Shown here: positions 5,811 to 61,841 of the stretch, piece by piece
How positions within the stretch are numbered: the stretch's first letter is position 1
How the letters are laid out: every line of letters begins with the position of its first letter
Assembly (NCBI RefSeq): GCF_006345805.1
Contig: NC_043019.1
Coordinates: forward strand, 5,579,360-5,643,359
Direction of reading: 5' to 3'
DNA length: 64,000 nucleotides
From: Octopus sinensis
Lineage: Eukaryota
Notes under the pieces: generated by a model
Databases searched by the model: none
Told to the model about the DNA's origin: nothing
Seen by the model: the letters and a program-made list of their open reading frames with translations, nothing else
Made by a program: the position numbers and the translations under genes

Positions 5811-5987
5811 TTAGCGTCCATTCTCCATGCTAGCATGGGTTGGACGGTTCAACTGGGATCTGTGAAGCTGGAAGGCTTCATCAGGCCCAGTCGGATCTGG
5901 CAGTGTTTCTACGGCTGGATGCCCTTCCTAATGCCAACCACTCCGTGAGTGTAGTGGGTGCTTTTTACGTGCCACCCGCACAGGTGC

Positions 5988-6619: not shown

Positions 6620-9205
6620 TCACTGGTCTTGCCGGGTTTTCTCACGCACAGCATACTTCCAAAGGTCTCGGTCTCTGGTCATTTCCTTGGTGAGACCTAA
6701 AGTTCGAAGGTCGTGCTTCACCACCTCGACCCAGGTTTTCCTGGGTCTACCTTTTCCACAGGTCCCCTCAACTGCCAGGGTGTGGCACTTTCGCACACAA
6801 CTATCTTCAGCCATTCTCATCACATGACCATACCAGCGCAAACGTCTCTCTTGCACACAACAACTGATGCTTCTTAGGTTCAACTTTTCTCTCAAGGTAC
6901 TTACACTCTGTCGATTATGAACACTGACGTTACACATCCATCGGAGCATACTAGCTTCATTTCTTGCGAGCTTATGCAAATCCTCAGCAGTCACAGCCCA
7001 AGTTTCACTACCATGTAGCATGGCTGTACGTACACATGCATCATACAGTCTGCCTTTTACTTTGAGCGAGAGGCCTTTTGTCACCAGCAGGGGTAAGAGC
7101 TCTCTAAACTTTGCCCAGGCTATTCTTACTCTAGCAGTTATACTTTCAGCACACCCGCCCCCGCTACTGACTTGGTCACCTAGGTAACGGAAACTATCAA
7201 CTACTTCTAGTTTTTCTCCCTGGAAAGTGACGGAAGTTGGTCTCAGAGCATTTTCAGTGTTTATTGTTCCTGAACATCTGCCACATACAAAAACCATCTT
7301 CCTAGTTAGCCTTCCTTTGACATTGCTGCACCTCTTATGTGTCCATAGCTTACACTTGGTGCATCTTATAGAGTTTCTACCTACCCCTTTTCTACAGATC
7401 GAGCAGGGCCATCTACCTGAAGGCGTTTGTGATTGGTCTACCTTCCTACTTATTAGGACTTTGGTTTTGGCTAGGTTGATTCTAAGGCCCTTCGATTCTA
7501 AACCTTGCTTCCATACCTGAAACTTCTCCTCTAGTTCTGATAGAGACTCAGCAATTAGAGCAAGGTCATCAGCATAGAGGAGCTCCCAGGGGCATCCTGT
7601 CTTGAATTCCTCCGTTATTGCCTGGAGGACTATGATAAATAGGAGGAGACTGAGGACTGAACCTTGGTGGACCCCAACCTCTACCCTGAATTCTTCACTG
7701 TACTCGATGCCAACCCTCACCTTACTAGCAGCGTCTCTGTACATGGCTTGTACAGCTTTCACTAACCATTCATCTATCCCTAGTTTCCTCATTGACCACC
7801 AGATGAGGGATCGGGGGACCCTGTCGAAGGCTTTCTCCATATCAACAAAGGCCAGGTATAGGGGCTTGTCTTTGGCTAGGTATTTCTCCTGCAGCTGTCT
7901 TACCATGAAAATAGCATCAGTAGTACTTTTCCCTGGCACGAACCCAAACTGCATCTGATCTAGGCTAACTCTCTCTCTAATTAGTTGGGCTATAACCCTC
8001 TCCGTAACCTTCATTACCTGATCCAGCAGCTTGATACCCCGTAGTTATTTGTATCTAGGGCGTCACCTTTACCTTTGTAGCAGCTGACTATTATGCTGCT
8101 ACACCAGTCATTGGGAATGACTCCTTTGTGTATCACCTTGTTAACTATACGGGTGACTAGGCTATAGCCGGCACTACCAGATATTTTGAGCATCTCTGCA
8201 GTAATTCCTGATGGGCCTGGGGCTTTTCCTGTTTTCATGCTTTTAATTGCCTTAACTACTAAGGAACTTTCAACCCGGATTGCTGGTCCCTCTGTTGGGT
8301 CAACATTCGGCAGACTCTCTTTATCCCATTCATTTTCCTCATTCAGCAACCTTTCATAGTGGCTTCTCCAAACCTCTCTCTTTGCATCCTCATTTAGCGC
8401 AAGTGAGCCGTCATCCGTGCGAACACATTTTTCTCCTACCACGTCACGATTCTCTCTCACACACTGTCTTGCTATACGAAATACCTCAAGTCTTTCATCC
8501 TCACGGAGCAGGACATTGGCAAATTTTTTCTTATCTGCTTCCCCTCTGGCTAAATAAACCTGCCTCCTAGCTTCCCTTCTTTCAGTCTGATACACTTCCC
8601 TGCTACCACCGTTCTTCCAGTCCTTCCAAGCCTGTTTCTTTTGTCTAATAGCCCTGTCAACAGTATTGTTCCACCACCACGTTATTTTGGGTCTTGTGGG
8701 GACTTTGCACCAGCCACAGATCTGGTCAGTGGCTTTTAGTAGGTTGTCCCTTAGAAGCGCCCAGTTATCTTCTACCCATGTGTAGCTATACCCCCTTCTA
8801 TTTCATCGAAGGCTTCAAGTAACATGTCTCTAAATCTCTGTCCATTTGCAGGGTCTTTAAGCTTCTAGATCCTTCTTCTCCATGTTGGTCGTCTTCTAGT
8901 CGTCCTCTTAGTCCTGATCCTAAAGTCACTGACTACCATTCTATGTTGTGGGGTACATTCTTTGCCTGGGAAGGTTTTGGCATTTATAAGCAGCCATTTT
9001 TCCCTTTTTCTGGCAAGGATGTAGTCGATTTGGCTAGTATGCTGGCCCGAACGGTAGGTGACCAAGTGGCTTGTTGGCTTCCTGAAGTTAGTGTTGCAAA
9101 CCATAAGACTATTCGCATCACAGAACTCCAGCAGCCTGGTTCCCTCCTCATTGCGAGAACCATAGCCTCCATGAACGCCATAGAAGCCCTCAGCATATCG
9201 TCCAA
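6620..9205 (-). pseudogene. RTE ORF broken by a nonsense codon (8865-8867) and two apparent 1-bp deletions (about 8775 and 8041)
   Basis: RRI-TAG-KLKD where Trp is expected; frame changes in HG(V)EDNW and DTNNY(R)GIKLLD. Confidence 0.85.
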
Positions 9206-9478
9206 AGATACCAGGAAACCCCAAAATGGCAGAAATCCAAAAGATAGTGCTCATGGGAACTGCTCAAATCCTACGCAAAATACTTTCTATGTAATCTCAG
9301 GGTTTAAAACAAATATTTTGGTTTTTTTTTTTTGGACATTCACTAGTACAACACCAAAAAAACCCCCAAATATATGGCACACTAGGCATAACAACAACAT
9401 GAACTTCCAACCTGTGGTCTCTTGAGGTCTCTGGGTGAGACTTAGAGCCAAAAGTCAAACATATAATAATAATAAAAA

Positions 9479-10341: not shown

Positions 10342-11036
10342 TTAAATGCTAAATGATAATAACACATTTGCAGCATTTGGATCCATATCTTTGAGCATAG
10401 CAAGACCTTTTCCAACATGCACAAATGCTTGCTGCATTTTCTTAATGGTGAAGTGGTGTGGCTCAAGTTTGACTTGCTCTTCTTCTTCTTTATTTATTAC
10501 TTGTTTTTTTCGATGATCTTCTTCAATGTCGCAGGAAATTCCACTGCTGCATGTTCCATCAGCTGATATGCTTTCACCTTGCTTCTTAATAAGGAAGTGA
10601 TAACTTCTCCAGCTTTTAAATCTCATAAACCATCCTTGACTTGCCTTGAACTCTACATCTTTCTCATCTGGATATTTTTTCTTTGGGTTCTCAAATAAAG
10701 ACAATGCTTTCTCCTGAACGATTTCTTGACTAAGAATAGCATTTGGATGATTCTTCCTATCAATCCAAATAGATAGAAGACTTTCCATTTCTTCAAAGAT
10801 TTTGCCTCTTTTCTGATGACAGTATTATTCATCCCTGGGGCTTCAGATGTGATATGTATTAAAATCTTGTCCTTATTATGCACAATCCTCAATACAGTTG
10901 TCCGACTCATTCCAAAACATTATGCAGTCACTACAACTTTTTCCCCTTCATCATGATGTTTTATCATCGCCGACTTATCCTCCAGCATCATAACATGACA
11001 CTTAGCACTTTCACCAGGACTTTTCGTAGGCGGCAT
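10342..11036 (-). mobile_element. Tigger/pogo transposase remnant (psq-HTH plus CENP-B HTH; DDE core deleted)
   Basis: MPPTKSPG...GMSRTTV; MESLLSIWI...QEKALSLFE...FKASQGWFMRFK; frameshifts and stop. Confidence 0.85.
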
Positions 11037-11736
11037 GGGGCCAAAAATTAAAGTTACAAATAAATGTAAGTGAGAGAATCTAAATGATGAACAGATGTAA
11101 ACAAATCTGAATTCAAAACAATCTCAGGAATCACGACGATGCTTAACTACCAGTGAAATATGAAAGACATAAATAAGCCAACACAGCTGATGCTTTAGTG
11201 AATTAGGCTACACTACTTTATGGTGTGTATTTTAGCATTTACTGTACTATTTTGATATGATTTTATATGCTTTTATTCTTATTTATTGTAACATCATTTT
11301 CTGTGCTTCCGATGGTTTTTAGTGTTTTTACAATTCCAATATTATTGTTGGACTGACTTGATTTTTATTTTTCCAGGTATTATTTTTGAAAACCAACATA
11401 ATTTCAAGAATGACTTCAGCCAAGGTGTCTCTCTATATATAATTATCATGTGCATTTTCTGTGATGTTTTTGAAAAGCGGTGCCAAATTTTACATTAAGC
11501 TTATAAGATATTATTATTGTCATTTACAGAATATAAAAGTATATATTTTTATCAATATTTAGCAGAAGCAAGGTCCAAGAGTTTTGTGTACTGGCATTTG
11601 GTAAGCGCCAATATACAAAACTCTTTAGTCACTTTATTGCTTCTGCTAAATATCAATAAAAATATACGTATACTCATATTTTGAGTTCTATTTTTCTATT
11701 TGCACCAACATACCTACACACACACACACACATAGT

Positions 11737-12134: not shown

Positions 12135-12735
12135 TCCTTTTAGCGTTCAGATTACTCAGTCAAATTTAATACTTATTTATTCACATTATTTTGAATTAAT
12201 CATAAATTATCTTGTAACTCAGATTTCAATAATGTGATAGATCATTATTAAAATGACATTGAATGATAGGTGTGAGAAGCCAGATCTAGCCAATTTGAAC
12301 ATGAAGCAGAAAGAATATTTTTGGACATGAAGCAGAAAGAATATTTTTGAACGTGAAGCAGAAAAAATATTTTTGAACATGAAGCAGAAAGAATATTTTT
12401 GGACATGAAGCAGAAAGAATATTTTTGAACATGGAGCACAAAGAATATTTTTGGACATGAAGCAGAAAGAATATTTTTGAACATGAAGCAGAAAGAATAT
12501 TTTTGAACATGAAGCAGAAAGAATATTTTTGAACATGAAGCAGAAAGAATATTTTTGAACATGAAGCAGAAAGAATATTTTTGAACATGAAGCAGAAAAA
12601 ATATTTTTGAACATGAAGCAGAAAGAATATTTTTGAACAAGAAGCAGAAAGAATATTTTTGAACATGAAGCAGAAAAAATATTTTTGTTGGCATGAGGCA
12701 GAAAGAATATTTTTGTTGGTATAAATGCTAAAGAG
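12135..12735. mobile_element. piggyBac-type MITE containing an expanded 26-bp minisatellite
   Basis: TTAA on both sides; body homologous to the reverse complement of 56153-56373. Confidence 0.75.
12297..12714. repeat. 26-bp minisatellite, about 16 copies (GAACATGAAGCAGAAAGAATATTTTT)
   Basis: Direct reading, period 26, no spacers. Confidence 0.97.
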
Positions 12736-16406: not shown

Positions 16407-17150
16407 TTATACAGTGGTAGCCTGTGATGTTTCCATGGCAACAACCTGCTCTGATTTCATCTTCACATAATATCTACCTTTACACCATGGACTCTGTAAA
16501 GTCATCAGCTTACAGTCACCAGGTATCAGCTTCTCCTTGTTTTCGGTGCTACAAACCACAAGGCAGAAATTGTTCAAGTGCAGTTCGTCATAAACAGGAC
16601 CATCTAAATGTTTTTTAATTACTTCCTTGTTTAATTCCTGCACCACCAAACTAACGACTTCTTCTGCTGTTGTATTGTGCGTTACACATAAGCGGACACT
16701 CGTACCTTTTGCGAGCCCTGTTTCATATGCTGCATAAACACGAATCACATCCGTTTTGGACGATGATGTTTGCTTTAACATACTATTCTCTTGATTGTTG
16801 TTGCTGTTGTTTTCTTGTGTTGGATCATAAAACTTGGCAATTTTCCTGTTGTCTTTGCCGACACTGATCAAATTGGAATCACAGAATAAAGAGTCGCTGC
16901 TCATTAAAGAACTGTGACTGGAATTCGTTAATCTTCCAATATCTCCAATTGCAAGAACCTGAGGTCCATAAGTCTGTGACAAAAGAGCTTTTACTGCTAT
17001 TCCACCATCTCGCTTTGTCTTGTCTCGAGAAAATGTTATTATATCCATAATCCAGCGGTTAGTTTTCCATATTTTCTCTGCTTCCAGTTGAAGATTGGTC
17101 AAAAGATCCACCCGTTCCTTGGCAGCAACTAATTCTGGAGAGGAAAATGC
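16407..17150 (-). CDS. ANKFN1: ANKFN1 terminal exon with Ras-association (RA) domain; ends ...ETSQATTV*
   Basis: [36 protein letters not shown]...[40 protein letters not shown]; acceptor cttcttgtag; TAA at 16407-16409. Confidence 0.95.
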   Translation of the reverse strand, partial: AFSSPELVAAKERVDLLTNLQLEAEKIWKTNRWIMDIITFSRDKTKRDGGIAVKALLSQTYGPQVLAIGDIGRLTNSSHSSLMSSDSLFCDSNLISVGKDNRKIAKFYDPTQENNSNNNQENSMLKQTSSSKTDVIRVYAAYETGLAKGTSVRLCVTHNTTAEEVVSLVVQELNKEVIKKHLDGPVYDELHLNNFCLVVCSTENKEKLIPGDCKLMTLQSPWCKGRYYVKMKSEQVVAMETSQATTV

Positions 17151-20100
17151 CTACAAGAAGAAAAAAAAGTTATGTTCATATATATTTTTTTACTGAAATC
17201 TATTTGTATTTTTTTCATTAAAGACTCAACTTTGATGCAGTTTTAATCTTTTTTTAATCTTTTTTGATGCAGTTTTAATCTTTTTTTTGTACAGATTTTT
17301 CATATTTTCTAACCAATGTCTATAAATATATTTAGAAACAGAATCTGTTAAGTGGGAACAATATATCTTAAAGTTATTGTTTTCATATTATTTTTGTGTC
17401 TAATATAAGGGGAAAATGTAACTAAAATCTGTTTTAATTGGGGTGAAGATAGGGGGGAAACAAAGAACTCACAGCTCTTCTACACTGTTGCAGTGATAAC
17501 ATAAATCCTACGATTACAGGCGAACTTAAGTTCAGTTGATGATGCTAAAAAGCTATGGGCTTGATCTACAAGTATAGCTATAGGTTGGAAAGATGAGATA
17601 TCTACCTCTCTCTGTGCTTGTTGTGCAAGTCCTAGGTCACACTCCAAAATAGAGGATAGACGAGAGTACAAAGACAATAAATCTGGTTGGTAGGTTGTCA
17701 TGTGATCTGTAAATAGGATCAGAGAAAACATTGGTTTTAAAAATTAATTTATAATTAATTTATAATCTGGCATTAAACAACAAGAGAAACAAAATCAGAA
17801 AATAAAAAGATTAAAAAAATGAATATTGTTATACTTGGGGATGGCCATATTTTGCTAATTAAACAATGCAGGTATTATATATTTGGTTTTCACTTTAGCT
17901 TTATTATTATTATTGCTTTACTTATTCCAGAACAAAAGGAGACACATGGGATAGAGAATCCCTGAATAGGTCACAGGATGTGTGATGAAAGAACTTTGAC
18001 AAAGAAACTAAAAAACAATAATAAAGCTCAAGTGAAGACCAAATATATAATGCATGTATTTAATTGGCAAAATATGACCATCCCCAAGTACCATAAATCC
18101 TTGAGTATAATCCGCATTTTTTTCCCAAAATTTAAAGGTCAAAATCCCTAGTGTGTACTATATACAAGGTTAAAAATGAAAAATATTTTCTAAGCAATGT
18201 CCGAGTCTCTATTTGCTGTCCGGCAATGTTTATTCAGACACATTTTGTGATGTCGGGCGTGAAAATACCTTAAGCTAAGCATGAAAGCAATGAAGTCATA
18301 AAAGAATCATCCATAACTTGCAGTAAGCAACATTTATTAAACGTTATTACTGTTATTTCTTTATTTTCTGCAAACAAAATGCACAAAAAAGCTACACATT
18401 TGCATCATGTTATATATACAATAATAATAAAGGACGTTACCGTATACATTTTTACAAACCAAGGACGTTATATAGACCTCCTTGACTCAAGTTAGAGAAG
18501 GGGTGTGTATAATACACAAGGTTTAGGTTTTTCAGAGGTACAGCCCCCAAAAATCCCCTGCGTATTATAGTCATGGGCGAACTAGACTCGAGGATTTACG
18601 GTATAACAATATTTGTTTCATCACACTACTCCATATCAAGAATCTTGCAAAACAAATACATAAACGTAAAAGGAAAACAAAAAAAGAATACTTTGGCAAA
18701 TTCTAGGTACTTACTCATTTCAAAGACTTGAACAGGCAAAGTCAGCAGTTCTGTGTACTGGGTGAATGGTTCAATATCCTTTCCTGGCACTATACAAACA
18801 TCTTCGGTTGGTGGAAGTAACACCAAGAATGCTACATCTTTACTCAACTCAACCACTTCAAGATCATACAGCCTATGATTATCTGCTTGGTCAGCCATTC
18901 CTGCAATCAGAGACAGACATTCAAAGGTGAGAGAGAATACAATCTATTCAGATCTTTCAGGCAACACATAATGATTCTGTAGTCAAGGGGATAAAATTGG
19001 ATGATGTGACAATCATGCCCTTTTATATTAGTAGTATTGTTTGTTCCTTCTCGAGCCACACCTGGCTCATTAGGATCCGGTTTCCTGGTTTCCCAGTTTC
19101 CTTGGCGTATAGGTTCCCCACCTGGACGGAACACCGGTCCACCACAGGTGAGATGCAAGATGCAGGAGGAAAGAGTGAGAGAAAGTTATGGTGAAAGAGT
19201 CAGCAGAAATTTCGCCATTATCTTCTGCCGGAACCACGTGGAGTTTAGGTGTTTTTGCTCAATAAACACACAGAACGCCTGGTCTGGGAATCGAAACTGC
19301 GATCCTCCGACCGAGAGTTCGCTGCCCTAACCACTGGGCCATTGTGCCCCCACAGTTTCATTATATATTGGTTTCAAACTTTGGTACAAGGCCAGTAATT
19401 TTGGGGAGGGCTAAGTCAATTACATTGACCCTAGTGTTCAACTGGTACTTATTTTATTGACCCCTGAAAGGATGAAGGGCAAAGTTGACCTCAGCAGAAT
19501 GTAAAAACAGATAAAATGCTACTAAGCATTTTGCCTGGTTTGCCATCGATTCTTATTTCTTTATTGCCCACAATTGCTCATCAAAAACAACATAGAGGGA
19601 ACAAACAAGGACAGACAAAGGGATTAAGTCGATTATATTGACCCCAGTGCGTAACTGGCACTTAATTTATCGACCCTGAAAGGATGAAAGGCAAAGTCGA
19701 CCTCGGTGGAATTTGAACCCAGAACGTAACGGCAGACAAAATACTGCTAAGCATTTCGCCTGGCGTGCTAACGATTCTGCTAATGAGCTAACGTTTGCCA
19801 ACGATTCTGCCAGCTCACTGCATTAATGCAAATCATTATATATTGTTCTTAGAACTACAATGCAATACCTGTAGCTGCAGTAAGGCTTGAACTCCTGACC
19901 ATATATGGTCAGTGGCCACTAGCTTAACCACATGGCTATCAAATTTTAACCAAGGTTCTAATAGGATTTATTTTAGATTTCAACTTACCCATCAGATCTA
20001 ATAGTTGTTGGATTGCTTTGTTTAAACTCCGATGGAAATCTTTCTGAATGGTAGATGCAGTTGGAAGGGCATCAACTCCTTTCCGAAAATGCTGTAACCA

Positions 20101-21821: not shown

Positions 21822-23153
21822 CACACACACACACGCATAATTTGGCAGGACAAAATTCTTACCTTGATACATTTGGACAGTCCCTGATTTTGACATGTGG
21901 TAAAATATTTGGCGCATTGTTTGGGGTGAAAACTTTGATGAGCTCCATGGAACTGACCAACTTCAAGTAGCCAAGGTATAAACCTCGTTGTGTTGGCACT
22001 GTACTAACGTCGTTGTAAAGAATCATATCCTGTAAGAGACAATATAAAAAAAAAAACTGTAAAATAATGTTTCACACGCACACAGACATATATGTACAAG
22101 TACATACATACATACATACATACATGTACATTGTTATTTGTTTTAAGATACAAAACACATAAAGGTACCCCATACATGTTTATATTAAAAGTATGCACAG
22201 TGTAAAGTATGTATATGTTGTAGAATGTAATGTATGTATATACTGTAAAATGTAATGTATATATATGGTCTACAATGTAAAGGGCTAACCCTTTCGTTAT
22301 TGTATATATATGCAAGGACTTTCTAAAAGTTCATGCAAAGTTATGAAGATGAAGTAATGTGGTCAATAACACATCATATCATAGGTCATAGCTCCTGGTT
22401 TATCATGTTGTGTATCATTGAGAATTTTCTTTTATTTTCATCTGTTAAACTGTTTCAACCCATTTATGAATATAACCAACCAAACAATACCGGCTGAGAA
22501 CTTGTATGGATGGCTTTGGAATTTGGCACATATAACAAGCACCTGTATTCAGGTCTCTTTCTCTCTTCACCTACCTGTTTCCATCTATCACTCTGTCTTA
22601 ACATTGTCTACCCCTATCACAACCCAACACTTCTCTCCCCCCTCTGTGACCTCTCACCTGAATCATTCTGTCTCTATCAGCAAATAAAGGAGATAGCCGT
22701 GTAGCAGTTGACCTCCATCTAATAAATACAGGATATTCCGGTATACTTTTGTATGTAAATGATGTTGTATTATTACAATAAGTGGTACATACCACTGAGA
22801 ACTGGTTTTTATTAGAATACAAGAAAACATGTTAACATGTGTTTGTGTGTGTGTATGTATGTTACTCTTTTACTCTCTTATTTGTTTCAGTCATTTGACT
22901 GCGGCCATGCTGGAGCATCACCTTTAGTCGAACAAATCAACTCCAGTACTCATTCTTTGTAAACCTAGTACTTATTCTATCAGTCTCTTTTGCCAAACCG
23001 CTAAGTTACAGGGACGTAAGCACACCAGCATTGGTTGTCAAGTGATGGTGGGGGGACAAACACAGATACACAAACATATGCACACACACACAGACACAGA
23101 AACACACACACACACATACATGCAATGAGTTTATTTCAGTTTCTGTCTTCCAA

Positions 23154-23184
<31 letters not shown>

Positions 23185-23341
23185 TTATATAGAAGGAGCT
23201 TCTACAGGACTAGAACTGTTTCATTCAAAAGAATCAGTTCTAGTCCTGTAGAAGCTCCTTCTATATAATAAATTAATTTACTCTGCTATGTATTGAGTAC
23301 CTTATTTACTGTGGTTAACGCCGACTCAACCCGGGACCTAC

Positions 23342-23409
<68 letters not shown>

Positions 23410-24100
23410 TAAGGGTATCTAAGACATACCACCATGCTAGATATAGCAGCCACAACTTGACTCTAAAACCACATTAAATGTTCATACAGCACCAGGAGAG
23501 AAGACAAAGAGCCAGAAATCCGGGATCTGGAATTATCCAATAATTTTTTTTGCTTGTTTATTTTGTCATTTTGTCTTCTCTCCTGGTGCTGTATGAACAT
23601 TTAATGTGGTTTTAGAGTCAAGTTTTGGCTGCTATATCTAGCATGGTGGTATCTTTTAGATACCCTTAATTATAATTTAATAACAATTATTACCTATGCG
23701 GTTTTTATTCCCATGCTAGCCACCTGATATGATCGGTATTTTAAATAACGATCTTATCCTTATATATATATATGGGTATAAGTAAGTATTTCATTTATTC
23801 CTTTGCCGCATTTATCACTGATGAAGAGAAGGTTCTTATGAACTAACTCTGAAATCGGGTCTGATATGATAATAACAGGATTTTTTGAAATTTCTATCGG
23901 CTTTTTTTGAGATATGTGCTTGTATTGATAAATTACATGGTTATTGACATTATGTCTATTTTCGGCATATTTTGGCATTAGAAATTTTTTTTCTTTTGCC
24001 CTTACTTATAAATTGTTTCTAAACTTAAACTATAAAGGTATTTTTTTGATATGCTGGCCATTGACAGAATTTTTTTCAAAAAATTTTATCCTGCATTAGA

Positions 24101-24150: not shown

Positions 24151-24837
24151 AATATATACATATCTATTTGTATGTGTGTGCGTGTGTGTGCATGCATGTG
24201 TGCATGGTTATTGCAACTTTGCTGGTTTCGATTTAAAATGTAAAAAGTATTGTTTTAAAAATATTTCGAAAAAGAAGTTGATAAAAGAAGTGGGTAGAAG
24301 AACTCATTCTACTTACCGCAGCAGAGTTCAAGAGTAGTTCATGCGCTTCACTGCTGTCTTGGTCTATAACAGTCATTCTCCGGTGAAGTTTGGCCAAGGA
24401 CACCCATTTACCAGAACCAAGAGCCAGGAATTTGGTGTCTTTGATTTCCTTGATACATACTAATACGGTGCTGCCATTGTTGTCTTTTAATGGCTGGTGG
24501 TAGAACTGTCCAAGATCACTGATGCCTAAAGCACTCTGTTAAGACAAGGAGAAATGGTAAAGTGAGAATACAGACACACAGCAATGGCATGGTGTGGGAT
24601 GCGCTGGGGTGGAACATATACTCTTTACTCTTTTACTCTTTTACTTGTTTCAGTCATTTGACTGTGGCCATGCTGGAGCGCCACCTTTAGTCGAGCAAAT
24701 CGACCCCCGAGACTTATTCTTTGTAAGCCCACTACTTATTCTATCGATCTCTTTTGCCGAACCGCTAAGTGACGGGGACGTAAACACACCAGCATCAGTT
24801 GTCAAGCAATGCTAAGGAGACAAACACACACACAAAC

Positions 24838-24877
<40 letters not shown>

Positions 24878-25388
24878 ATATATACGACAGGCTTCTTTCA
24901 GTTTCCGTCTACCAAATCCACTCACAAGGCATTGGTCCGCCCGGGGCTATAGCAGAAGACACTTGCCCAAGATGCCACGCAATGGGACTGAACCCGGAAC
25001 CATGTGGTTGGTTAGCAAGCTACTTACCACACAGCCACTCCTGCGCCTATTACATTTAAGCCATCAGCATTCAAATTGCTCTGTCAAATGCAATGGTTTT
25101 TTATTCACGTTGCTTGGAATCAGTCATGCATTGTTTTGTAGCTTTGAGATTTCTGTTATGGGATTAGTCTTTTACTTGTTTAGTTGAAGAAATCGACCCC
25201 AGGACCTATTCTTTGTAAGCCTAGTACTTATTCTTTGTGCCTCTTTTGCTAAACCACTAAGTTACAGGGATGTAAACACACCAACATTGGCTGTCAAGCG
25301 ATGGTGGTGGGGATAAACACAGACATACATATAAATATACATACATACATACATACATACATACATACATACATACATACATACATAC

Positions 25389-27514: not shown

Positions 27515-30500
27515 TAATATCCGTTTTCCATGCTAGCATGGATTGGATGGTTTGATCAGAGCTGGCACGCAGAAGAGCTGTTCTACGTTCCAGCCTGATT
27601 TGGCCTGGTTTTTTGCAGTGTGTGCTGGGTGCTTTTACTTGGCACCAGCATGAGTGCTTTTTATGTGGCACCGGTACAGGACTCTTGAAGGCCAATCCTC
27701 TTCACCAGAGGGAGTGACCCTAATACTTCTGCTGTGGGGGACAGGTTTTCATGAGTAAGTCCTCCACAGCAGAAGCGTTAAGGAAGAGTTAAGGCCACTC
27801 CATCTGGTGAAGCAGAATGGTCTGCAAGAGTTCTATGCTGGCGCCGGTGGCTGGAATGGATGGTAATTTATATAGTTTGCTAGTTCAGACAATTAGAAGC
27901 TGTGGTAGTTATGGTAAAAGAAATAGAGGAACAGACAAAGAATGCTGGTGAAATAGGAGCTATAGCATAATCACCAAGAAAAGTAATGAGAAAATTATGA
28001 AGTCTAGCAACTGTAAAGCTTGCATAAGTTTTATTTGTGAGTTGTTCAAAGGTCCCAGTTGACCTGATCAACAGAACAGCCTGCTTGTGAAATTAACATG
28101 CACGTGGCTGAGTACTCCACAGACCTGTAGTTCACAGGGAGATTCAGCATGAGACAGTATATGACAGGACTGACCTTTTGAAAAACAGGTGGTACTCATT
28201 TTTACCAGCTAAGTGGACTGTATTAATCATCATCATCATCATCATCATCGTTTAAACGTCTGTTTTCCATGTTAGCATGGGTTGGACGAATGACTGAGGG
28301 CTGGCAACCAGATGGCTGCACCAGGCTCCAGTCTTGATCAGGCAGAGTTTCTACAGCTGGATGCCCTTCCTAACGCCAACCACTCCGAGAGTGTAGTGGG
28401 TGCTTTTTACGTGCCACCTGCACGGGGGCCAATCAGGCGGTACTGGCAATGACCTCGCTCGAATCTTTTACACGTGCCACCGACACAGGTGCCAGTGAAG
28501 TGACGTTGGTAATGATCACACTCAAATGGTGCCCTTTTACGCGCCACAGGTACGGAAGCCAGTTTGCTGCTCTGGCAACGATCACAATGATCACGCTCGT
28601 ATTAATGTATAAGAATTTACCTAAACATGTATTGAAATATAGCAGGTCTTCATTGCTGGTCTAATAACATAATGCTGAGCCTACTCTAGGAATAAAAAGA
28701 TTTATATATACTGCAACCTATACATCTGCTTCCAATACATATCTGTTTGTGTGACTTACCTTCATAAGCCAATAAAAATCTGTGTGTATTGAGGTGCTTG
28801 AATAATTCTCATCAACTTCCACAACTGGCAACTGATCTTCTGGAGTGACAAGGATTTTGTCTTTGTGATACAAGAGGCAGGATAGGTAGATCCCTCTGAA
28901 ACAATAAATCACATTTAATAAATAAGGAGCAATAAAATATATCAGGGAACCACTCATATCTTAAGGGCTACACTAATGTCTACTTGTTGAGAAGGACTTG
29001 GGTTTGTTTTATATATATATATATATATATAAATAGGTGAATGAATTATCCTATGTTTATCGTTAGCATGGAAAATTCGTTTAACCGAAACCTGGGTAGC
29101 AAATTCACGTCAGAAAAACGGTTGAAGTGACCTGTCAGGGGTAGAAATTCTGGGTTCATGTGCAGAAATTTGTGTGTCGTATATGAATAAATGAAAGAAT
29201 GGAGTCGAACGAAGATGTTAACAAAATTCCTTTACTCTCGACACATGTTTCGAAGACAGCATGTTTTCATTCCAAAGGAATAAAGGGTGCATTATGCAAG
29301 CTTCTCATCAGGAAAGAAAGGGAGCCTCTCTCGACAACAAGACAAACAAAAATTTCGAGGATTTTTGTTTGTCTTGTTGTCGATAGAGGCTCCCTTTCTT
29401 TCCTGACGAGAAGATTGCATAATGCACCCTTTATTCCTTTGGAATGAAACCATGTTGTCTTCGAAACATATGTCGAGAGTAAAGGAATTTGTTAACATCT
29501 TTGTTCAACTCCATTCTTTCATTTATATATATATATATATATATATTAGTTAATGTAGAAATATGGTGATTAAGTTAATATTTGAAATAAGTTAATATAT
29601 AACAACTAACCCGTACTTGCATGGAGGATGGTATGTGTTAGATGTTATCATTTCTTGACCACTAACTGACCAATATACTTGTAGTCTAGCAAGCTATAGT
29701 TCAGCTACCAGCCCAGATTCTGTTGGTTGTCAGACTAAGAAAAGCAAACTTTCAAGGTATTGTTTACCTTTCACAGGTAAACTATGGTTGAGCCTGTGAC
29801 AGAGGAGACCCCCAGTGTTCTCAGCCCCCCAAACCATATCTCTGCACACTGCTATTGAGGTGGAGATGGCTATCCGCAAGTGTGAGTCCCGTGGGTTAGA
29901 GTGGCTGCTCCAGCACCTCTCCCTCATCATCCTCTGGGTCAATCCTTTTTCCATTTTGTCTGCTGAGATCATGAAAAAGTTTGAATTATAGGAAATTCTA
30001 CTTCCACTCCTCAACGTGAAGTTACTCCACACATATTGCTCAGTGCCTGTCTGTAGGACACACAGCATTCAGTTTTTTAAGCACTTCTTAGTTATTATCC
30101 AGCATGTCAACCCCATAATCCATCTGATGAGTGTATATATCTGTTGTGTATCTCTAGTTTCAGGAACACTGTGTTTTAACTAATGACCAAAATTTCCGCT
30201 ATAAAAGACCAACAAATAAGCAGTCATTGAGCTAAACAAACCTGTTTTAATTAGCTTATCACCCTCCATCACTTACTTTAGATTTTCTTCAATATAATGA
30301 AGTAAATTATTAAAATCTTACCTTTGAAGGGATTTCTGAAATTTTGGTGATAATGAGAAAAGATTCTTTAAACTTTTTCTTTTCCTCTGGACTGGTGAGT
30401 CTCCCGATGGCTCTGTAAATAAATAAATAAAAAATAAATTTGAACTCAGAACATAAAAGACGAATGAAATGCCACCAAGCATTTTGTCCAGAGTGCTAAC

Positions 30501-31572
30501 GATTCTGTCAGCTTGCTACCTTAGAAACAATGACTAAATAGTGACAAAGAATTACTTAAGAATTTGGTAATTATAGGTGAGAAGAAAGTTTGTAGACTAA
30601 CCTTTGATAGCAGGTGCATCTGTGGGTCTTGACTGCCTAACTTGAGAGAATAAGTCTTCAAGAGTGTTTACTTTCCATTGAGAGCGAGGGACTATGTTGT
30701 CAACATCATGCCAACCTTGTAGAGAAAGAAGAATCAATTTCCAATTATTCTTTGTGACAAATCTCTCATTCTAGATTCTTTGATACAATATTTATGGGAC
30801 TGACTGATGGACAAACTTATAGACCAGTGGTTCTCAACCATTTTTTGCCTATGGACTGTTTTTATTACTATTCTATTCTTTGTGGGCTCCCAAAGCCATA
30901 TGATGTTTAAAAACTGGTTTTATAGATGCTTCTTTCAAAATTCCTATTTTATTTTTCACTCTTGTGTAAACTGAACTATGTAAACCATTTGAGAAATAAA
31001 CTGAGCTGCTTTTTAAATACCTCTTAAATACATCTTTTAAATACATCTTAAGTAGCATTTTTTCATGGACCCTGAAAATACTACTGTGGATCCCTAGTTT
31101 ACTATTTTGCTTGCTTGGACTCCCAAAAGTCTTACATAGTCCCCTGCTGAGGACCACTGTTATACACAATTTGATCAGACAGTATACCACTTCCATACAA
31201 GAGATGCAGATTATACATACAACTTCCATAAAAACCAGTCTAATGTATCCCCTCTGCCAATCATCATTCTTATATGTCTTACCTTAACCCTTTTCATAGC
31301 AATCCACCTAGGACCATCTCTATTTATTTGATAGGAAAGTGCCAGTTTTAAAATATTTGCACTTAAATGTTAACTTCCATAATTTTTTAGTCCACATCTA
31401 TAGGCGCAGGAGTGTTTTAACTAATGACCAAAATTTACCAACCACATGGTTCTGGGTTCAGTCCCACTGTGTGGCATCTTGGGCAAGTGTCTTCTGCTAT
31501 AGCCCCGGGCCGACCAATGCCTTGTGAGTGGATTTGGTAGACGGAAACTGAAAGAAGCCTGTCGTATATATG

Positions 31573-31609
<37 letters not shown>

Positions 31610-32315
31610 TTGTGTGTCTGTGTTTGTCCCCCTAGCATTGCTTGACAACCGATGCTGGTGTGTTTACGTCCGCGTCACTTAGCGGTTCGGCAAAAGAGAC
31701 CGATAGAATAAGTACTGGGCTTACAAAGAATAAGTCTCGGGGTCGATTTGCTCGACTAAAGGCGGTGCTCCAGCATGGCCACAGTCAAATGACTGAAACA
31801 AGTAAAAGAGTAAAGAGTATCGTTCTGTTATGTTTCATTCTAAATAACAATTCACCCTCTACCCTACTGTCCTTCACCCCTACATTGGGGTCACTCACCA
31901 CTGCCCTAGTATCACTCACCACGGCCCTAGTATCACTCACCTGTGCTTTTTAAACAATTATATAACCAATAACCAATAATTTATACAGTCATTAACTGAT
32001 TAATAATTACTTACACAATCAGCTGATTTTTTAAAATATAACAATTGGTTGATTGAGAAATTAATTACAAAATCATTCACTGATTCATAATTACAATATT
32101 TGTTAAGTAATTAATAATGATTTTTATAACCATTCGTTGATTTTTCTTTTAATTATTTTTATGGCAATTTACTGATCCTTAATTATTCATAAAGCCATTA
32201 GTGTTAAATATTTATATAGTCATACACAATTACTTTTATAGGTCATTAGCCGATTCCTACTTACTTGTACAGATCTCTTTCAATAGGTCAACAACACTGA
32301 TACAATCTAATATAC

Positions 32316-33886: not shown

Positions 33887-33929
<43 letters not shown>

Positions 33930-34416
33930 ATTAGATAAAGATAGTTAAGGCTGGTCTGTGACTTTACCCTGGGTTTCACGTCCATAAAGTGCTTAGCTTT
34001 ACAGTGGTTTCTATGGACCCTAATAGCTGGCTGTTAGCGTCCTTTGAAATGCTGTAAAGCTAGGTGCTTTATGGATGTGAAACCCAGGGTAACCCCATAG
34101 ACCAGCCTTAACTATCTTTATCTAATTACTCTACTGCTCTATAACTTTGAGTGGGCTTCTCTTCTGGATTTATTACTTACTGATGATATATATATATATA
34201 TATATATATACCGGAGTAAACACATAAATGTGAAACAAGGTGGAAAAAAGAGTACTCAAATACCAGTGGTAGAGTAATATGCTTTATTTAAAGTAGCAGA
34301 AAATTCAACAAAACCTGTTACTCTGAGTTTCCTGTTGCCGTAAAAACTGTCCGATGAACGGCAACGGGAAACTCAGAGTAACAGGTTTTGTTGAAATTTC
34401 CGCTGCTTTAAATAAA

Positions 34417-34457
<41 letters not shown>

Positions 34458-41101: not shown

Positions 41102-42739
41102 ATGCTAATGCTTGTATAAATGTTTCCCAAGATGACACATGTCACATCAAGAGATGAGATTTTCAGCTAAAATTTCACAGATTCAGGCAATTACTCAGTT
41201 TGAGCTATAAATACAAAATAACCACTTCTATTGGGGTTTGAACCTAAGATCTTAGACCTTTCTGTGACTTGTGACCCATGACATGACATACAGACACTTA
41301 GGGTAAGAAATGAGATTTCCCACGGGTTGGTGAAGGAGGGTTCACTGAATATTTTATTAACTACCCCAATCTTTATTCACACCATAACTTTCTGAGAAGG
41401 GGAAAAGGGGAAAAGGGGAAAAGGGGGTTGTAACTTTGTCAATGAAACATCATTGTCCTTCACCATTCCTCCTCCCTCACCCTCTATCTCATTCTGTAAA
41501 TTATTCTTAGACAATTCAAGAAAGATGACATCATCAGCGTGCGTGTGATTATAGAAATTATACGAGCACTATACCGCGCGTGAAACACTGAAAGAAAAGA
41601 AGTAGGAGGAAGTGGGACGAAGGAGGGGGAAGAGCTTGTGGTTAAAGGGAGTGGGGGTAAGAGGAGAGATTCCATCATTCTTAGTGTATGTGTGCGCATG
41701 TGTGTGTGTGTGTGTGTATACTTACATAAAGGGTTCTCCTTGGCACCATAGCTAAGTAACAGCTTTGCCATGGGAATATTGTTGGTCATCACAGCTATAT
41801 CCAGGGCAGTCAGGTGTTCATTATTTAATCTAAATATAGAAACAAGAGAAACACTTACATATATATATGGCTTAAATACAGTTACACACACACATCATAC
41901 ACACATCACACACACACACATACACACATGCATGCATACATCCGTATTAATGTTTGTTTTGATGTTGAATTGTAATGAAGACGGTTTTATATTAATCTCT
42001 TGGATTACTCTATATTTTTGTAGAGTACAAATTTATTATTCTAAGACAAGAATATTGTTGACAGTGACTTTGAAGTTTCAGCTAGCTAAGCCATTGTCAG
42101 ACAATGGCTTAGCAGACTGACACTTCAAAGTCACTCTCAACAATATTCTTGTAAGAATAATATATATATATATATTATATATATATATAGATATAATATT
42201 TATATTGTTGTGCAAGATTTTTTATGTGAAGTCGTGTGTTGAAACAGATATTGTTATATTTAGGAATGGTCATTTTGCCAGTTTAGCCAATAAAAACACA
42301 CGCTCTATATATTTGGTGTTACTTTGCTTCAGGGTTATTTATTTTTTACATTAATCTTAATCTTATTTCGGCCAGAGTTCTTTCGTCACACTCCTGTGAC
42401 CGCATCAGTGGTCCTTTGTTTTCTTCTCACTTATTTGTGTCTCTCCTTACTAACCATCAGCCATTTTGTATTTCTATTGTATGTCTTCATTCACGCATGC
42501 GTATATCTCTATGTGCGTCTATACAAAATGGCTGACGGTTAGTAAGGAGAGACACAAATAAGAAAGAAGAAAACAAAGGACCACTGATGCGGTCACAGGA
42601 GTGTGACGAAAGAACTCTGGCCGAAATAAAATTTAGTTTAATGTAAAAAATAATAACACTGAAGCAAAGTAACACCAAATATATAGTGCGTGTGTTTTTA
42701 TTGGCTAAACTGGCAAAATGACCATTCTGAAATATAACA

Positions 42740-42784
<45 letters not shown>

Positions 42785-44128
42785 GGGTGTGATGGGGAAA
42801 TTGTCACCATTTTACATTTTGAATTTCGTGCATGCACATTGTTTGCTTTTGATTTTGTCAATTACATAGTATAGTAGGGTCAGTTGGGCACTGTCTGTGA
42901 GAAAAACAGCACCATGACGCAATTCACTCTGCCAGAGATTTGGAAACAACATACTACACAGCTTGGCATTTGCAACAGAAGCTCCATTGTAAACATTTCA
43001 GAGTGTTTGGGGATCAAACTGAGGACAGTGCAATCTGTGGACCTGTACTGAAAGTGATAAAAATCAAACATCCAGTCAACATCATGGTGTTTGGAGCGAT
43101 CACTAGTGATGGTGACATTATGTTTCCATTCATCTTTCCACATGGCCTCAGACTCAACACGGAGGCTTACATCAAGTGCCTGAAGGAGGTAGTGCTGCCC
43201 TGGGTCAAGAGGGTGGCTGCTGGAAGACCCTATATCTGGCAACAAGACTCTGCACCAAACTACACAAGCGGGGGAACCTAGTCATGGCTGTCAGACCATT
43301 TCTGCGACCACATCCCCCCTAACATCTAGCCACGTAACTCTCCAGACTGCAGCCCCCTTGATTATTATGTGTGGGGTGCAGTTGAGTAAAAGACCAACAA
43401 AACTCCTTGTAACACCAAAGATGAACTGAAGGCAAGGATTATGGCAGCATTCACCAACTTAAACAAGGAGACCGTCCAGAACCGACATCATCTGGAGGCT
43501 GTGGTTGAAGCCAATGGTGCTTTTATTGAATAAATTCACTCTTTAGTATTTCAAGATATTTTTATGTAATTTTGGTAAAAAATATGTTAAAATGAGATGC
43601 CAGTGTTATTTTCATTTTTGTGTAACTTAGATGACAATTTATTCACCACACCCTGTATAAACATGCACACACATACACACACACACGAGCATATATTTAT
43701 ATATCACCCTCATCATTAATATCCACTTATCCAAGCTAATCAAACAAATTATGCTGAGGTAGATTTCCCTGCACCAGGATGCTCTTCCTGTCATGAAACC
43801 TCACATTTTTTTTTGCCCAAATATGGTAAAGATTAAAAGCAACAAAAATATCTTAGGCTGAACACATCTCTGGTGGGATTGGTGTGCATACAAACATATA
43901 CATACATCAACAACACTATTGTCATCACTACAGCCCCAATTAAAACTCTGACCAACTGCCTGCGCCCCTTATCGACTGGTAGGGTTATCTTTATATCTAA
44001 CTTTTTATCAGGTTCCTGCACATAATTAGCAGAGATCACAGTTCATTCTGGCAAATTGTTTGATTAAATAGAAAATATATATGATAGGACGCCTTCATTT
44101 GGATAAAACATGTCTGTTTGTCTGTCCG

Positions 44129-48410: not shown

Positions 48411-49981
48411 TGAGTGTGTTTTGTGTGTGTGTGTGTGTTTGTATTGACATGTTTTTTCTCTCTCCCCATTTTTTTCAACCCTTTCTGTTGAAGAGACTCC
48501 CCCATTTTTCCCAAGCATTAAGCTAATACACCTGCTTGTTGCTCTCTCACCTGTCTCTGTCTTTTGTTTTCTATGCATTTGAAACACACACACACACACA
48601 CACAAGTTAAAGAAATGTATAGCAAATGCACAAATGAATGGAAAACAGGCGCACAAGGTACCCCGACTCCCTATCAGTTATTGGCCAGAGGGTTGGATGC
48701 AATTTCGTACCTTAACAATAATATTGCTTTAAGAGGTTGTTTGCTATGGCCAATCAGAGAGTGACCATTGGTTTTGCACCTGTGAAGTGCTTAGATGTAT
48801 GGGCAACTTGTTAGACTCAAATGGCTGGAGGCACGTAACCTCTCTACAATACACACACACACGTGCACAGACACACACACACATATAGTATATATATATG
48901 TATATATATTTCTTTACTGCCCACAAGGGGCTAAACACAGAGGGGACAAACAAGGACACACAAAGGGATTAAGTCGATTACATCGACCCCAGTGCGAAAC
49001 TGGTACTTTATTTATCAACCCTGAAAGGATGAAAGGTAAAGTCGACCTCGGCGGAATTTGAACTCAGAACGTAACGACAGATGAAATACCGCTAAGCATT
49101 TCACTCGGCGCGCTAACATTTCTGCCAGCTCGCCACCTTAATATATAGTATATATATAGTATATATATATAGGTGCAGGAGTGGCTGTGTGGTAAGTAGC
49201 TTGCTTACCAACCACATGGTTCCGGGTTCATTCCCACTGTGTGGCACCTTGAGCAAGTGTCTTCTACTATAGCCTCGGGCCGACCAAAGCCTTGTGAGTG
49301 GATTTGATAGACGGAAACTGAAAGAAGCCTGTCGTATATATGTATATATATATATATGTGTGTGTGTGTGTTTGTGTGGCTGTGTTTGTCCCCCTAGCAT
49401 TGCTTGACAACTGATGCTGGTGTGTTTACGCGCCCCGTAACTTAGCGGTTCAGCAAAAGAGACTGATAGAATAAGTACTAGGCCTACAAAGAATAAGTCC
49501 TGGGGTCGATTTACTCGACCAGAAGGCGGTGCTCCAGCATGGCCAGAGTCAAATGACTGAAACAAGTAAAAGAGAGCATGTACTCACTCTTATAGATAGA
49601 CATAGATTGTTCTCAGAAGTCGTGATAGATTCCAACAAGAGACAGCACTGGACACCAATATCCAAGGAAAGTCAACAAAAGAGTATATATAATGGAAACA
49701 CTTCAACTGTATGGAGTGCTGATGTGTCAGCAGTGGTGATCATGGTCGGAAACTGACGATAGTGGTCAGGATGATGTCAGTGATGATACAAATGCATATA
49801 AAGAGTTTCTATACAAAGAATTTCCATATCCTAAACAATACAAACACACACACACACACACACACATACATACATACATACACACTGTTGTATGTATCAT
49901 TCAACAATGAGTCAATTTATCAATGGGAGTGACCATCCTGTCTATATTTGGTTAGATACTCTACATTTGCTGCTGCTGCTG

Positions 49982-53939: not shown

Positions 53940-53988
<49 letters not shown>

Positions 53989-59608: not shown

Positions 59609-59708
59609 NNNNNNNNNNNNNNNNNNNNNNNNNNNNNNNNNNNNNNNNNNNNNNNNNNNNNNNNNNNNNNNNNNNNNNNNNNNNNNNNNNNNNNNNNNNN
59701 NNNNNNNN
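59609..59708. other. Assembly gap (100 N)
   Basis: Run of exactly 100 N, a placeholder length. Confidence 0.99.
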
Positions 59709-61572: not shown

Positions 61573-61615
<43 letters not shown>

Positions 61616-61830: not shown

Positions 61831-61841
61831 AGAGAGAAAGA

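Follow-up and report, generated by a model that had tools for sequence, protein, structure and literature searches.

The 64-kb window, the whole stretch of DNA that was analysed, contains parts of a gene on its minus strand, with an ankyrin domain encoded at 41484-41891, an FN3 domain spread over two exons (at ~35 kb and 32.4 kb) and an RA domain encoded at 16407-17111. Judged by this domain order, the host is an ANK-FN3-RA (ANKFN1-like) gene. A neighbouring coding exon was tentatively placed at 28724-28890 on the same strand, on the basis of an open frame, a cag/AGGG acceptor at 28890 and a GAT/GTATAG donor. Composition and repeats point to an invertebrate. Searches with the RA-domain exon returned exon-like proteins only, the best of them in 1-kb Logan contigs (SRR11869385-94), with 91% identity at the protein level and 87.5% at the nucleotide level. 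The contigs of this relative break at (TA)n tracts, contig L001 ending inside the tract at ~16202. Since they end at such tracts, a contig carrying the exon at 28724-28890 would stop at 29010-29033, before reaching the element described below.

The intron next to this exon harbours a 354-bp palindrome. It is made of a left arm (29180-29353, minus strand, in the same sense as the host gene), a right arm (29361-29533, plus strand) and a 7-nt spacer, TTCGAGG (29354-29360), at its centre. MAFFT alignment of the arms as inverted copies indicated 94% identity, and a separate alignment gave 10 mismatches and 1 indel over 173 aligned positions (K2P 0.060). An inverted-repeat search resolved the palindrome into two blocks separated by a single 1-nt indel, 29224-29353/29361-29490 (130 nt, 95%) and 29180-29232/29481-29533 (53 nt, 87%). 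The first-pass annotation of this DNA had described arms of ~165 bp with a 7-nt loop; these are real, and the arm ends it gave (29187 and 29526) lie within 7 nt of those measured here.

The unit is flanked on both sides by (TA)n microsatellites, as had been noted, at about 29008-29033 on the left and about 29524-29547 on the right (29010-29031 and 29524-29545 by pattern search). The right tract abuts the 3' end of the right arm, which enters it directly at 29524. On the left, an extension of 146 nt (29034-29179, minus strand) prolongs the left copy past the point where the right arm ends. This extension, previously described as ~150 nt long, is matched by nothing on the right side and is not repeated elsewhere in the window; a short degenerate (TG)3..(TA)3 forms its inner end (29170-29186). 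It may represent the 3' part of the longer copy, or else DNA of unrelated origin. Tracts of (TA)n thus enclose the whole unit, at 29033 and at 29524. This is weaker evidence than it may seem, because (TA)n tracts of at least 12 nt occur 113 times in the window and cover 3.8% of it. A target-site duplication is unreadable within such flanks; a candidate based on the repeat 29012-29043/29524-29555 was rejected, with only 8 of 12 bases matching outside the TA run.

Each arm carries one complete motif of a type I hammerhead ribozyme (HHR), at 29397-29480 on the plus strand and at 29234-29317 on the minus strand. Both were recognised by descriptor and by the Rfam model RF00163, which was matched end to end (model positions 1-45) with 20.0 bits (E = 0.0088) for the plus motif and 18.1 bits (E = 0.037) for the minus motif. 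These E-values refer to a 117-nt search against all Rfam families; rescaled to RF00163 alone over 64 kb, E was ~0.001. The matches appeared only when each arm was searched alone against Rfam, and a whole-window scan at the gathering threshold returned only a tRNA and neither HHR. Neither motif reaches the gathering score of 34; the deficit stems from 49 nt inserted in helix II and not from mismatches in the core.

The conserved catalytic core (C3 U4 G5 A6 N7 G8 A9, G12 A13 A14, A15.1-U16.1, H17) is complete in both arms, with CUGACGA at 29403-29409 and GAAA at 29463-29466 in the plus motif, and CUGAUGA at 29311-29305 and GAAA at 29251-29248 in the minus motif. The G10.1-C11.1 pair, read from the sequence, is also kept. 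Both arms display the three-helix type I layout, helix I being open and helices II and III closed. In the plus motif, helix I is formed by 29393-29402 pairing with 29475-29485 (10 bp, U29480 bulged). Helix II has 4-6 bp, with GAAG/CUUC in the plus motif, plus the 49-nt branched insert. Helix III, ACAUAUGU at 29466-29473 in the plus motif and ACAUGUGU in the minus motif, is an 8-nt self-complementary stretch that folds as a stem of 2 bp closed by a palindromic loop of 4 nt. The GUC triplet predicts cleavage after C17 at 29474 on the plus strand and between 29240 and 29239 on the minus strand. The motif regions have a G+C content of 0.39-0.40.

These results bear out most of what the first-pass annotation had read at the locus. 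Its two complete, outward-reading hammerheads, one per strand, correspond to the end-to-end RF00163 matches; its cleavage positions agree with the sequence; and the singly bulged 10-bp helix I, the self-complementary helix III and the GUC triplet all read as it had described them. Its placement of the minus copy in the sense of an ANKFN1-type gene agrees with the domain order and strand of the host, and the exon that it expected ~330 nt further on has its putative acceptor (28890) 350 nt downstream, in the sense of the gene, of the minus-strand cleavage site.

Chance occurrence of the motif was estimated with descriptors of different stringency. A loose type I descriptor is expected to match 0.025 times per random 64-kb window, and a strict one, composed post hoc from all observed features when the motif was already known, gave 0 matches when both strands of 40 Mb of simulated sequence were scanned. 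The loose descriptor returned a third HHR-like match at 23818-23866, which Rfam does not recognise and which lacks the G10.1-C11.1 pair; it was treated as unverified.

The weight placed earlier on the presence of two intact hammerheads has to be reduced, as they are one motif duplicated and 6% diverged, and do not count as independent observations. Three of the 8 internal substitutions between the arms are CpG transitions. Among them is the U-versus-C difference at N7, which had been pointed out before and which is present in the sequence as a CpG-to-TpG change. The ribozyme region contains 5 differences in 84 nt, compared with 3 plus 1 indel in ~82 nt elsewhere in the arm. With 6% divergence and ~14 invariant positions, ~0.8 core changes are expected and the probability of observing none is ~0.4, so that the intact cores are uninformative on selection. 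The CpG transitions and the lack of any deficit of changes in the ribozyme region make the decay of the arms look neutral.

A pair of inverted HHRs on opposite strands is an arrangement already reported in animal genomes: dual min-HHRs lying ~100-700 bp apart on opposite strands are probably related to truncated Penelope-like elements (PLEs) (PMC4209133). PLE insertions are highly 5'-truncated, are often accompanied by an inverted 5'-truncated copy that results in inverted repeats, carry HHRs near their 3' ends and show a bias for insertion into microsatellites (PMC8557442). The locus described here is organised in the same way. Its arms are head-to-head with their 3' ends outward and meet at a 7-nt junction; the right arm has its cleavage site 49 nt inside its outer end, close to the 3' end as in PLE terminal repeats; the two HHRs are on opposite strands, separated by a few hundred bp; the right arm enters a microsatellite; and the palindromic helix III and the G10.1-C11.1 pair are retained. 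We therefore consider it reasonably probable that the locus is a decaying relic of an HHR-bearing PLE or retrozyme-type retroelement, inserted head-to-head into (TA)n in an intron of the ANKFN1-like gene, the family of the element being assigned from its architecture only.

According to this interpretation, the element would be a PLE, or a non-autonomous "retrozyme"-type repeat mobilised by a PLE, and its target would have been a (TA)n microsatellite within the intron, of which the left tract is presumably one half. The arms would correspond to two severely 5'-truncated 3' terminal regions whose 5' ends meet at the spacer, the presumed junction of the two copies, and whose 3' ends face outward to (TA)n, with the type I ribozyme ~50 nt inside the outer end of each arm. 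Two routes may account for this structure. The endonuclease may nick both target strands, both nicks then priming reverse transcription, or the reverse transcriptase may switch template onto the nascent cDNA; either route would lead to an inverted duplication. In vitro, cleavage and extension of both DNA strands by a purified PLE protein have been demonstrated (PMC11167929). Following insertion, neutral decay, in part by deamination at CpG sites, would have brought the arms to their 6% divergence.

Several features fit this interpretation less well. The documented preference for (TA)n is strongest in Naiad PLEs, which are devoid of canonical HHRs, and this counts against a PLE relic; (TA)n targets are documented for Naiads, and for Neptune elements a bias is only hypothesised (PMC8557442). 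The one-sided excess of ~146 nt at the left end is longer than the PLE "tail", which measures 30-40 bp and is found at one end only (PMC8557442, PMC11167929). The motif is also not the "minimal" PLE variant, and its helix II has an unusual 49-nt branched insert. Lastly, there is no PLE frame nearby, and the likeness is one of architecture. No reading frame for a PLE-type reverse transcriptase or GIY-YIG endonuclease was found at the locus or elsewhere in the window, where the sole reverse transcriptase (6620-8014, minus strand) is accompanied by an Exo_endo_phos (APE-type) endonuclease and is that of a LINE. Truncated PLE copies are expected to have no reading frame, so this absence does not exclude PLE ancestry.

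Searches for relatives of the arm were negative. In the 64-kb window, blastn with word size 7 gave (TA)n matches only, and comparison of the window with itself gave no further copy and no direct repeat of the arm unit. Metagenome scans, using a gapped ribozyme pattern and a 21-mer of the helix II insert, and a viral scan returned no match to the arm. Two reading frames of 82 and 68 aa cross the centre of the palindrome; exact protein look-up gave no record for either, and searching called proteins for homologues of the 82-aa frame yielded no candidate. No second copy having been found in the window, the metagenome and viral scans or the called proteins, the arm is not proven to belong to a repeat family.

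The retrozyme variant of the relic interpretation was compared with metazoan non-LTR retrozymes (PMC7229834), which resemble the locus in their canonical-looking type I HHR, short palindromic helix III and animal host. Metazoan retrozymes are recognised by a G+C content below 45-50%, a unit of 170-400 nt, tandem direct repeats of 150-450 bp that each carry a type I HHR, and expression as linear and circular RNAs of unit length. The G+C content here is low (~40%), and the arm alone (174 nt) or with the extension (320 nt) is within the range of unit lengths. Retrozymes have been proposed to be PLE-derived non-autonomous elements (PMC7229834; Li et al. 2026, preprint 10.64898/2026.07.22.740005). 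They are defined by tandem direct repeats that give unit-length circular RNAs after two cleavages (PMC7229834), whereas only two copies are found here, in inverted orientation, and the defining tandem arrangement is missing. With one same-sense cleavage site per transcript, we infer that the locus could not release a unit-length RNA.

The palindrome may alternatively have been made at the DNA level, either as a foldback or MITE-type transposon that carries by chance, or has captured, an HHR repeat, or by inverted duplication of a solo HHR repeat next to (TA)n; we regard this as possible, though clearly the less probable origin. A solo repeat could be duplicated by replication template switching or hairpin repair, and the ribozyme would still be retroelement-derived. 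What makes such an origin plausible is the presence in the window of at least 12 other MITE-like self-palindromes of 90-500 bp (for example 23399-23679, 17832-18090 and 42249-42742), several of which end in TA or abut (TA)n, together with remnants of Tc5/pogo-type transposases. (TA)n tracts form hairpins and are fragile, and the arms are symmetric to within the 7-nt spacer, as a fold-back duplication predicts. The inverted repeat that marks such transposons is trivially present. However, the termini of the 29180-29533 palindrome have nothing in common with those of the other palindromes, and the 64 kb contain it only once, while several copies of other repeat families occur there. The outward 3' ends at a microsatellite, each with a ribozyme nearby, also reproduce the published pattern of PLE insertions and argue for the retroelement relic.

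Folding predictions indicated how transcripts of the element would behave. The RNA of the palindrome folded at -273.8 kcal/mol, as opposed to -76.6 +/- 5.1 kcal/mol for shuffled sequences (z = -39). In transcripts of either strand, the 174-bp hairpin was favoured over the ribozyme-constrained ensemble by 122-129 kcal/mol, and in the host-sense transcript its advantage over any fold containing the ribozyme was 129 kcal/mol. The isolated plus arm (105 nt) folded into helices I and II; isolated arms showed no unusual stability (z = -0.5 to -1.2), and within a 147-nt context the minimum-energy structure differed from the ribozyme fold. Whichever strand is transcribed, the sense ribozyme belongs to the downstream arm and is made after its own complement. 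It would therefore be expected to zip into the hairpin, host pre-mRNA included, which makes self-cleavage unlikely. On these thermodynamic grounds, self-cleavage in transcripts crossing the element should be negligible, and apart from adding a long dsRNA hairpin to the intron, the element most likely does nothing for its host.

Could this hairpin be the functional unit? The 174-bp intronic dsRNA may give rise to small RNAs (hairpin-RNA or endo-siRNA), or be a substrate for RNA editing or dsRNA sensing with an effect on the host transcript, and the stability of the hairpin and its position within a transcribed intron are consistent with such a role. The palindrome also gave matches to mir-4782, MIR6024 and other microRNAs, but these are far below gathering and expected of any perfect hairpin; likewise, the sub-threshold microRNA and snoRNA matches of a 801-nt Rfam search were regarded as generic hairpin artefacts. 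Many comparable palindromes are present in the window and nothing sets this one apart, so we find a dedicated dsRNA function unlikely.

Cleavage of nascent ANKFN1 RNA, implied in the first-pass annotation, is less likely still. In this reading, the minus-strand HHR would be an active intronic ribozyme that cuts the ANKFN1 pre-mRNA and modulates its splicing or expression. The minus copy does have the sense of the host gene, a complete core and all three helices, and there are precedents in the conserved, retroelement-derived type I HHRs located in introns of RECK, CTCL and DTNB (PMC6155905). Those amniote ribozymes share with the locus their type, their ancestry and their position in introns of protein-coding genes, in the sense of the gene; they are nevertheless single motifs conserved across vertebrate classes, whereas the motif described here is paired with its own complement and is decaying neutrally, with no sign of constraint in the distribution of changes inside and outside the ribozyme. 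Its complement is transcribed first, and the predicted energies given above disfavour the active fold in the host-sense transcript and even in isolated arms or their 147-nt context. Helix III argues in the same direction. Canonical metazoan type I HHRs that function in dimeric form, in tandem copies, typically have a self-complementary helix III (PMC4209133); dimeric activity would thus require a second sense copy, which an inverted pair cannot supply within one transcript. Finally, Li et al. 2026 (10.64898/2026.07.22.740005) report that vertebrate introns are depleted of retrozyme copies, which fits insertions that are tolerated or harmful and not adaptive. An active intronic ribozyme is accordingly very improbable.

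We give slightly less credit to two proposals in which the inverted pair is not inert, both suggested by its geometry only. In the first, transcription starts inside the element and proceeds outward. PLE terminal repeats can contain promoters, and arms made in this way, without their complement, may be able to cleave, possibly as dimers formed in trans through helix III. In the second, the palindrome may be the DNA copy of an ambisense, viroid-like circular RNA with an HHR in both polarities. Hammerheads in both polarities are a property of Avsunviroidae and retroviroid-like circular RNAs, and the locus similarly has one hammerhead per strand of a highly self-complementary unit of ~350 nt. In contrast to those RNAs, both ribozymes here derive from a single sequence in chromosomal DNA, one being the reverse complement of the other, with no second same-sense site for unit-length release and no sign of an RNA replicon.

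The least credible explanation is that assembly produced the palindrome, through a chimeric fold-back read or an overlooked adapter for instance, and that the genome has one arm: library and assembly artefacts can yield palindromes, and a 100-N scaffold gap at 59609-59708 indicates that the assembly is unfinished, but the gap is 30 kb distant, unique sequence flanks the internal element on either side, and the arms differ at 10 positions and 1 indel with a pattern of CpG transitions, whereas those of a fold-back artefact would be identical.

Read as the relic of a PLE or retrozyme-type element, the locus would indicate that HHR-bearing retroelements were once active in this invertebrate lineage, targeted (TA)n and left head-to-head truncated pairs, which is useful for repeat annotation. 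It also calls for caution, as an "intact" ribozyme in an intron does not equal function when it is a young duplicate, neutrally decaying and locked in a hairpin with its complement. The geometry is general: outward-facing ribozymes in a palindrome are always transcribed after their antisense copy, a rule that can be used for the triage of similar findings. The minority readings, if true, would mean that mobile ribozymes can influence host genes by a new route; outward transcription, in particular, would make the element a bidirectional, ribozyme-terminated transcription unit inside the ANKFN1 intron.

A second inverted pair, unrelated to the palindrome described above, was observed at 53986-54091/54239-54343 and also speaks for the relic interpretation. 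It has CUGAAGA...GAAA cores and a self-complementary helix III, ACUCAGAGU, and the pair (53986-54343) also begins exactly at a (TA)n tract.

The inverted repeat at 29180-29533, in which a first-pass annotation had recognised a palindrome carrying two intact hammerheads, is a genuine, slightly decayed palindrome. Repeat searches identified an inner portion (29224-29353/29361-29490), where 130 nt in each arm are 95% complementary with 7 nt between them, and an outer portion (29180-29232/29481-29533) of 53 nt, 87% complementary and shifted by a 1-base offset. MAFFT alignment indicated that the arms are 94% identical; in a global alignment of 173 positions they differed by 10 mismatches and one 1-nt indel (K2P 0.060). 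Folded as RNA, the whole palindrome formed a single hairpin of -273.8 kcal/mol (shuffles, -76.6 +/- 5.1; z = -39). The TA microsatellite, (TA)n, flanks and the left extension described previously were also found: the tracts lie at 29010-29031 and 29524-29545, and an extra 146 nt of unique sequence (29034-29179) are present between the left tract and the left arm.

Searching each arm alone returned full-model matches to the type I hammerhead ribozyme (HHR; Rfam Hammerhead_1, RF00163) at 29397-29480 on the plus strand (20.0 bits, E = 0.0088) and at 29317-29234 on the minus strand (18.1 bits, E = 0.037). These E-values correspond to a 117-nt search with all 4227 families; rescaling to one family and the full 64 kb brings E to ~1e-3. 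Both arms score lower than the gathering threshold of the family (34 bits) because helix II holds a 49-nt insertion, yet every core position fits. The Rfam scan of the whole window at gathering threshold reported tRNA only, and no hammerhead. Inspection of the sequence revealed the cores CUGACGA (29403-29409, plus strand) and CUGAUGA (29311-29305, minus strand), a helix II (GAAG/CUUC) closed by G10.1-C11.1, GAAA followed by helix III (ACAUAUGU on the plus strand, ACAUGUGU on the minus strand), a helix I of 10 bp in which one U is bulged, and a GUC triplet with predicted cleavage after 29474 (plus) and between 29240 and 29239 (minus). Helix III is made of a 2-bp stem and a palindromic tetraloop, equivalently an 8-nt self-complementary stretch. 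All these elements agree with the first-pass annotation, including the N7 difference between the arms (GACGA versus GAUGA). A loose type I descriptor gave 0.025 matches per random 64-kb window, and a strict descriptor with all observed features, composed after the motif had been seen, had no match across 40 Mb of simulated sequence. The hammerhead motif is no chance match.

Both motifs are copies of one sequence, and the differences accumulated between the arms do not spare the ribozyme: 5 are found in the 84-nt ribozyme motif against 3 and the indel in the other ~82 nt. With 6% divergence and ~14 invariant core positions, ~0.8 core substitutions are expected; none was seen, which has a probability near 0.4. 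Of the eight internal substitutions, three are CpG transitions: the N7 difference and two in the outer arm part (TTCGT/TTTGT and TCGAC/TCAAC). The substitution pattern is that of unconstrained, probably methylated DNA.

The minimum-energy structure of the plus-strand arm alone (105 nt) contained helices I and II, and isolated arms were of ordinary stability (z = -1.2 and -0.5); in a 147-nt context, the ribozyme fold was not the optimum. Both ribozymes read outward, so that in the transcript of either strand the antisense arm comes first and the sense ribozyme second. For transcripts of both strands, each reaching from the beginning of the upstream arm to where the downstream ribozyme ends, the hairpin was the minimum-energy structure (-223.7 and -223.8 kcal/mol). 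Imposing helices I-III with the core left unpaired raised the ensemble free energy by 128.6 kcal/mol in the host-sense (minus) transcript and by 121.8 kcal/mol in the plus transcript. The kinetic route would favour the hairpin too, since the 7-nt loop nucleates before the ribozyme strand emerges. Metazoan type I hammerheads with such a helix III are described as cleaving efficiently only as dimers of tandem copies (PMC4209133; PMC7229834); the inverted pair has only one sense copy per transcript.

The palindrome lies in an intron of a minus-strand gene with the domain order ANK-FN3-RA, which fits the ANKFN1 host proposed earlier. On this strand we found an ankyrin exon (41484-41891), an FN3 domain shared by two exons, one near 35 kb (profile positions 1-33), the other near 32.4 kb (profile positions 50-80), and an RA-domain exon (16407-17111). 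In the gene sense, the next exon downstream is at ~28724-28890 (minus strand; acceptor cag/AGGG, donor GAT/GTATAG), and 350 nt separate its acceptor from the cleavage site on the minus strand. In view of the energetic preference for the hairpin and the lack of sparing of the ribozyme, the idea of a functional ribozyme pair acting on ANKFN1 is not supported; most likely, the palindrome has no host function beyond that of a long intronic hairpin.

Point by point, the anatomy of the palindrome matches what has been published on how Penelope-like elements (PLEs) behave. PLE hammerheads are found in terminal repeats near the 3' end; PLE insertions are highly 5'-truncated, often joined to an inverted 5'-truncated copy to give inverted repeats, and are biased towards microsatellites (PMC8557442). 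'Dual' hammerheads on opposite strands, 100-700 bp apart, were interpreted as truncated PLEs (PMC4209133); the arrangement is already known in kind, and this locus is a further member. Both target strands were nicked and extended in vitro by a purified PLE protein (PMC11167929). Animal retrozymes, HHR-bearing repeats with canonical type I hammerheads like those found here, are proposed to be non-autonomous PLE derivatives (10.64898/2026.07.22.740005). In our reading, the 3' end of a PLE-type or retrozyme-type element is present here in two 5'-truncated copies, which would have been fused head-to-head within a (TA)n tract and would have decayed since insertion; nicking and extension of both strands by the PLE protein could provide a direct route to head-to-head copies. 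The 6% arm divergence is about half of the 12.5% divergence from the nearest available relative (87.5% identity at the RA exon, 1-kb Logan contigs), so the insertion is probably younger than the split from this relative, provided that rates have been neutral and that gene conversion has not acted between the arms. Among PLEs, a preference for (TA)n has its best documentation in Naiads, which are devoid of canonical hammerheads (PMC8557442), and documented PLE tails are 30-40 bp long, whereas the one-sided extension here is ~146 nt. No Penelope-type reading frame was found in the window, and no other family member in the window, metagenome and viral scans, exact look-ups or a protein homology search.

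An inverted duplication arising at the DNA level, which we consider unlikely, would be in keeping with the many MITE-like palindromes of the window. At least 12 others of 90-500 bp were found (2468-2608, 11542-11666, 17832-18090, 23181-23272, 23399-23679, 27667-27845, 33928-34128, 34277-34422, 42031-42165, 42249-42742, 51667-51789 and 57004-57165); they are MITE or foldback-like, since many are TA-ended or adjoin (TA)n. Those at 17832-18090 and 42249-42742 have termini in common (GGCCATATTTTGC / GGTCATTTTGCC-like). The divergence between the arms speaks against an assembly artefact, which would have left them identical.

The window contains a second, independent inverted pair (arms 53986-54091 and 54239-54343, 87% complementary, 147-nt spacer), the left arm of which begins exactly where a (TA)n tract (53944-53985) ends. 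Each arm contains an outward-reading CUGAAGA...GAAA and a self-complementary ACUCAGAGU in the position that helix III would take. Rfam recognised no hammerhead in 53986-54343, helix II would require a bulged C beside G12, and the pair appears hammerhead-like only. It has nothing in common in sequence with the palindrome at 29 kb beyond the core. The second pair suggests that insertion has recurrently produced ribozyme repeats of this arrangement in this genome, inverted, outward-facing and associated with (TA)n. At 23818-23866 (plus strand), beside a short (TA)n, CUGAUGA..GAAA..UA forms a compact hammerhead-like motif in which helix I has 6 bp and helix II has 4 bp; without the G10.1-C11.1 pair and unrecognised by Rfam, it could be either a decayed copy or a match by chance.

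The window (37% G+C) is very repeat-rich; (TA)n tracts no shorter than 12 nt number 113 and make up 3.8% of it. A dispersed SINE-like repeat of ~380 bp is present in many copies in both orientations with 75-95% identity (among others 4016-4389, 22862-23155, 24626-25012, 31434-31819, 49205-49574 and 61432-61834). The minus-strand element at 6620-9254 was rejected as a PLE; it is a LINE remnant with RT and APE-type endonuclease, made of a 464-aa frame (RVT_1, E = 1.7e-26; weak PHD/C1-like cysteine-rich match) and preceding frames that match Exo_endo_phos_2 weakly. A remnant of a Tc5/pogo-type transposase DNA-binding domain is located at 10342-10788 (minus strand; HTH_Tnp_Tc5, E = 1.2e-8), and a 113-aa frame at 42940-43281 (plus strand) without Pfam match is transposase-like by eye. 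Tandem arrays at 5957-6541 and 12294-12715 (self-matches offset by ~60-125 and ~52-104 nt, respectively) are the source of long spurious reading frames, and a 100-N run at 59609-59708 marks a scaffold gap. A tRNA-Arg with anticodon CCG (57055-57127, plus strand; Rfam tRNA, 49.9 bits) lies in an intron of the host gene, embedded in the weak 162-bp palindrome at 57004-57165.
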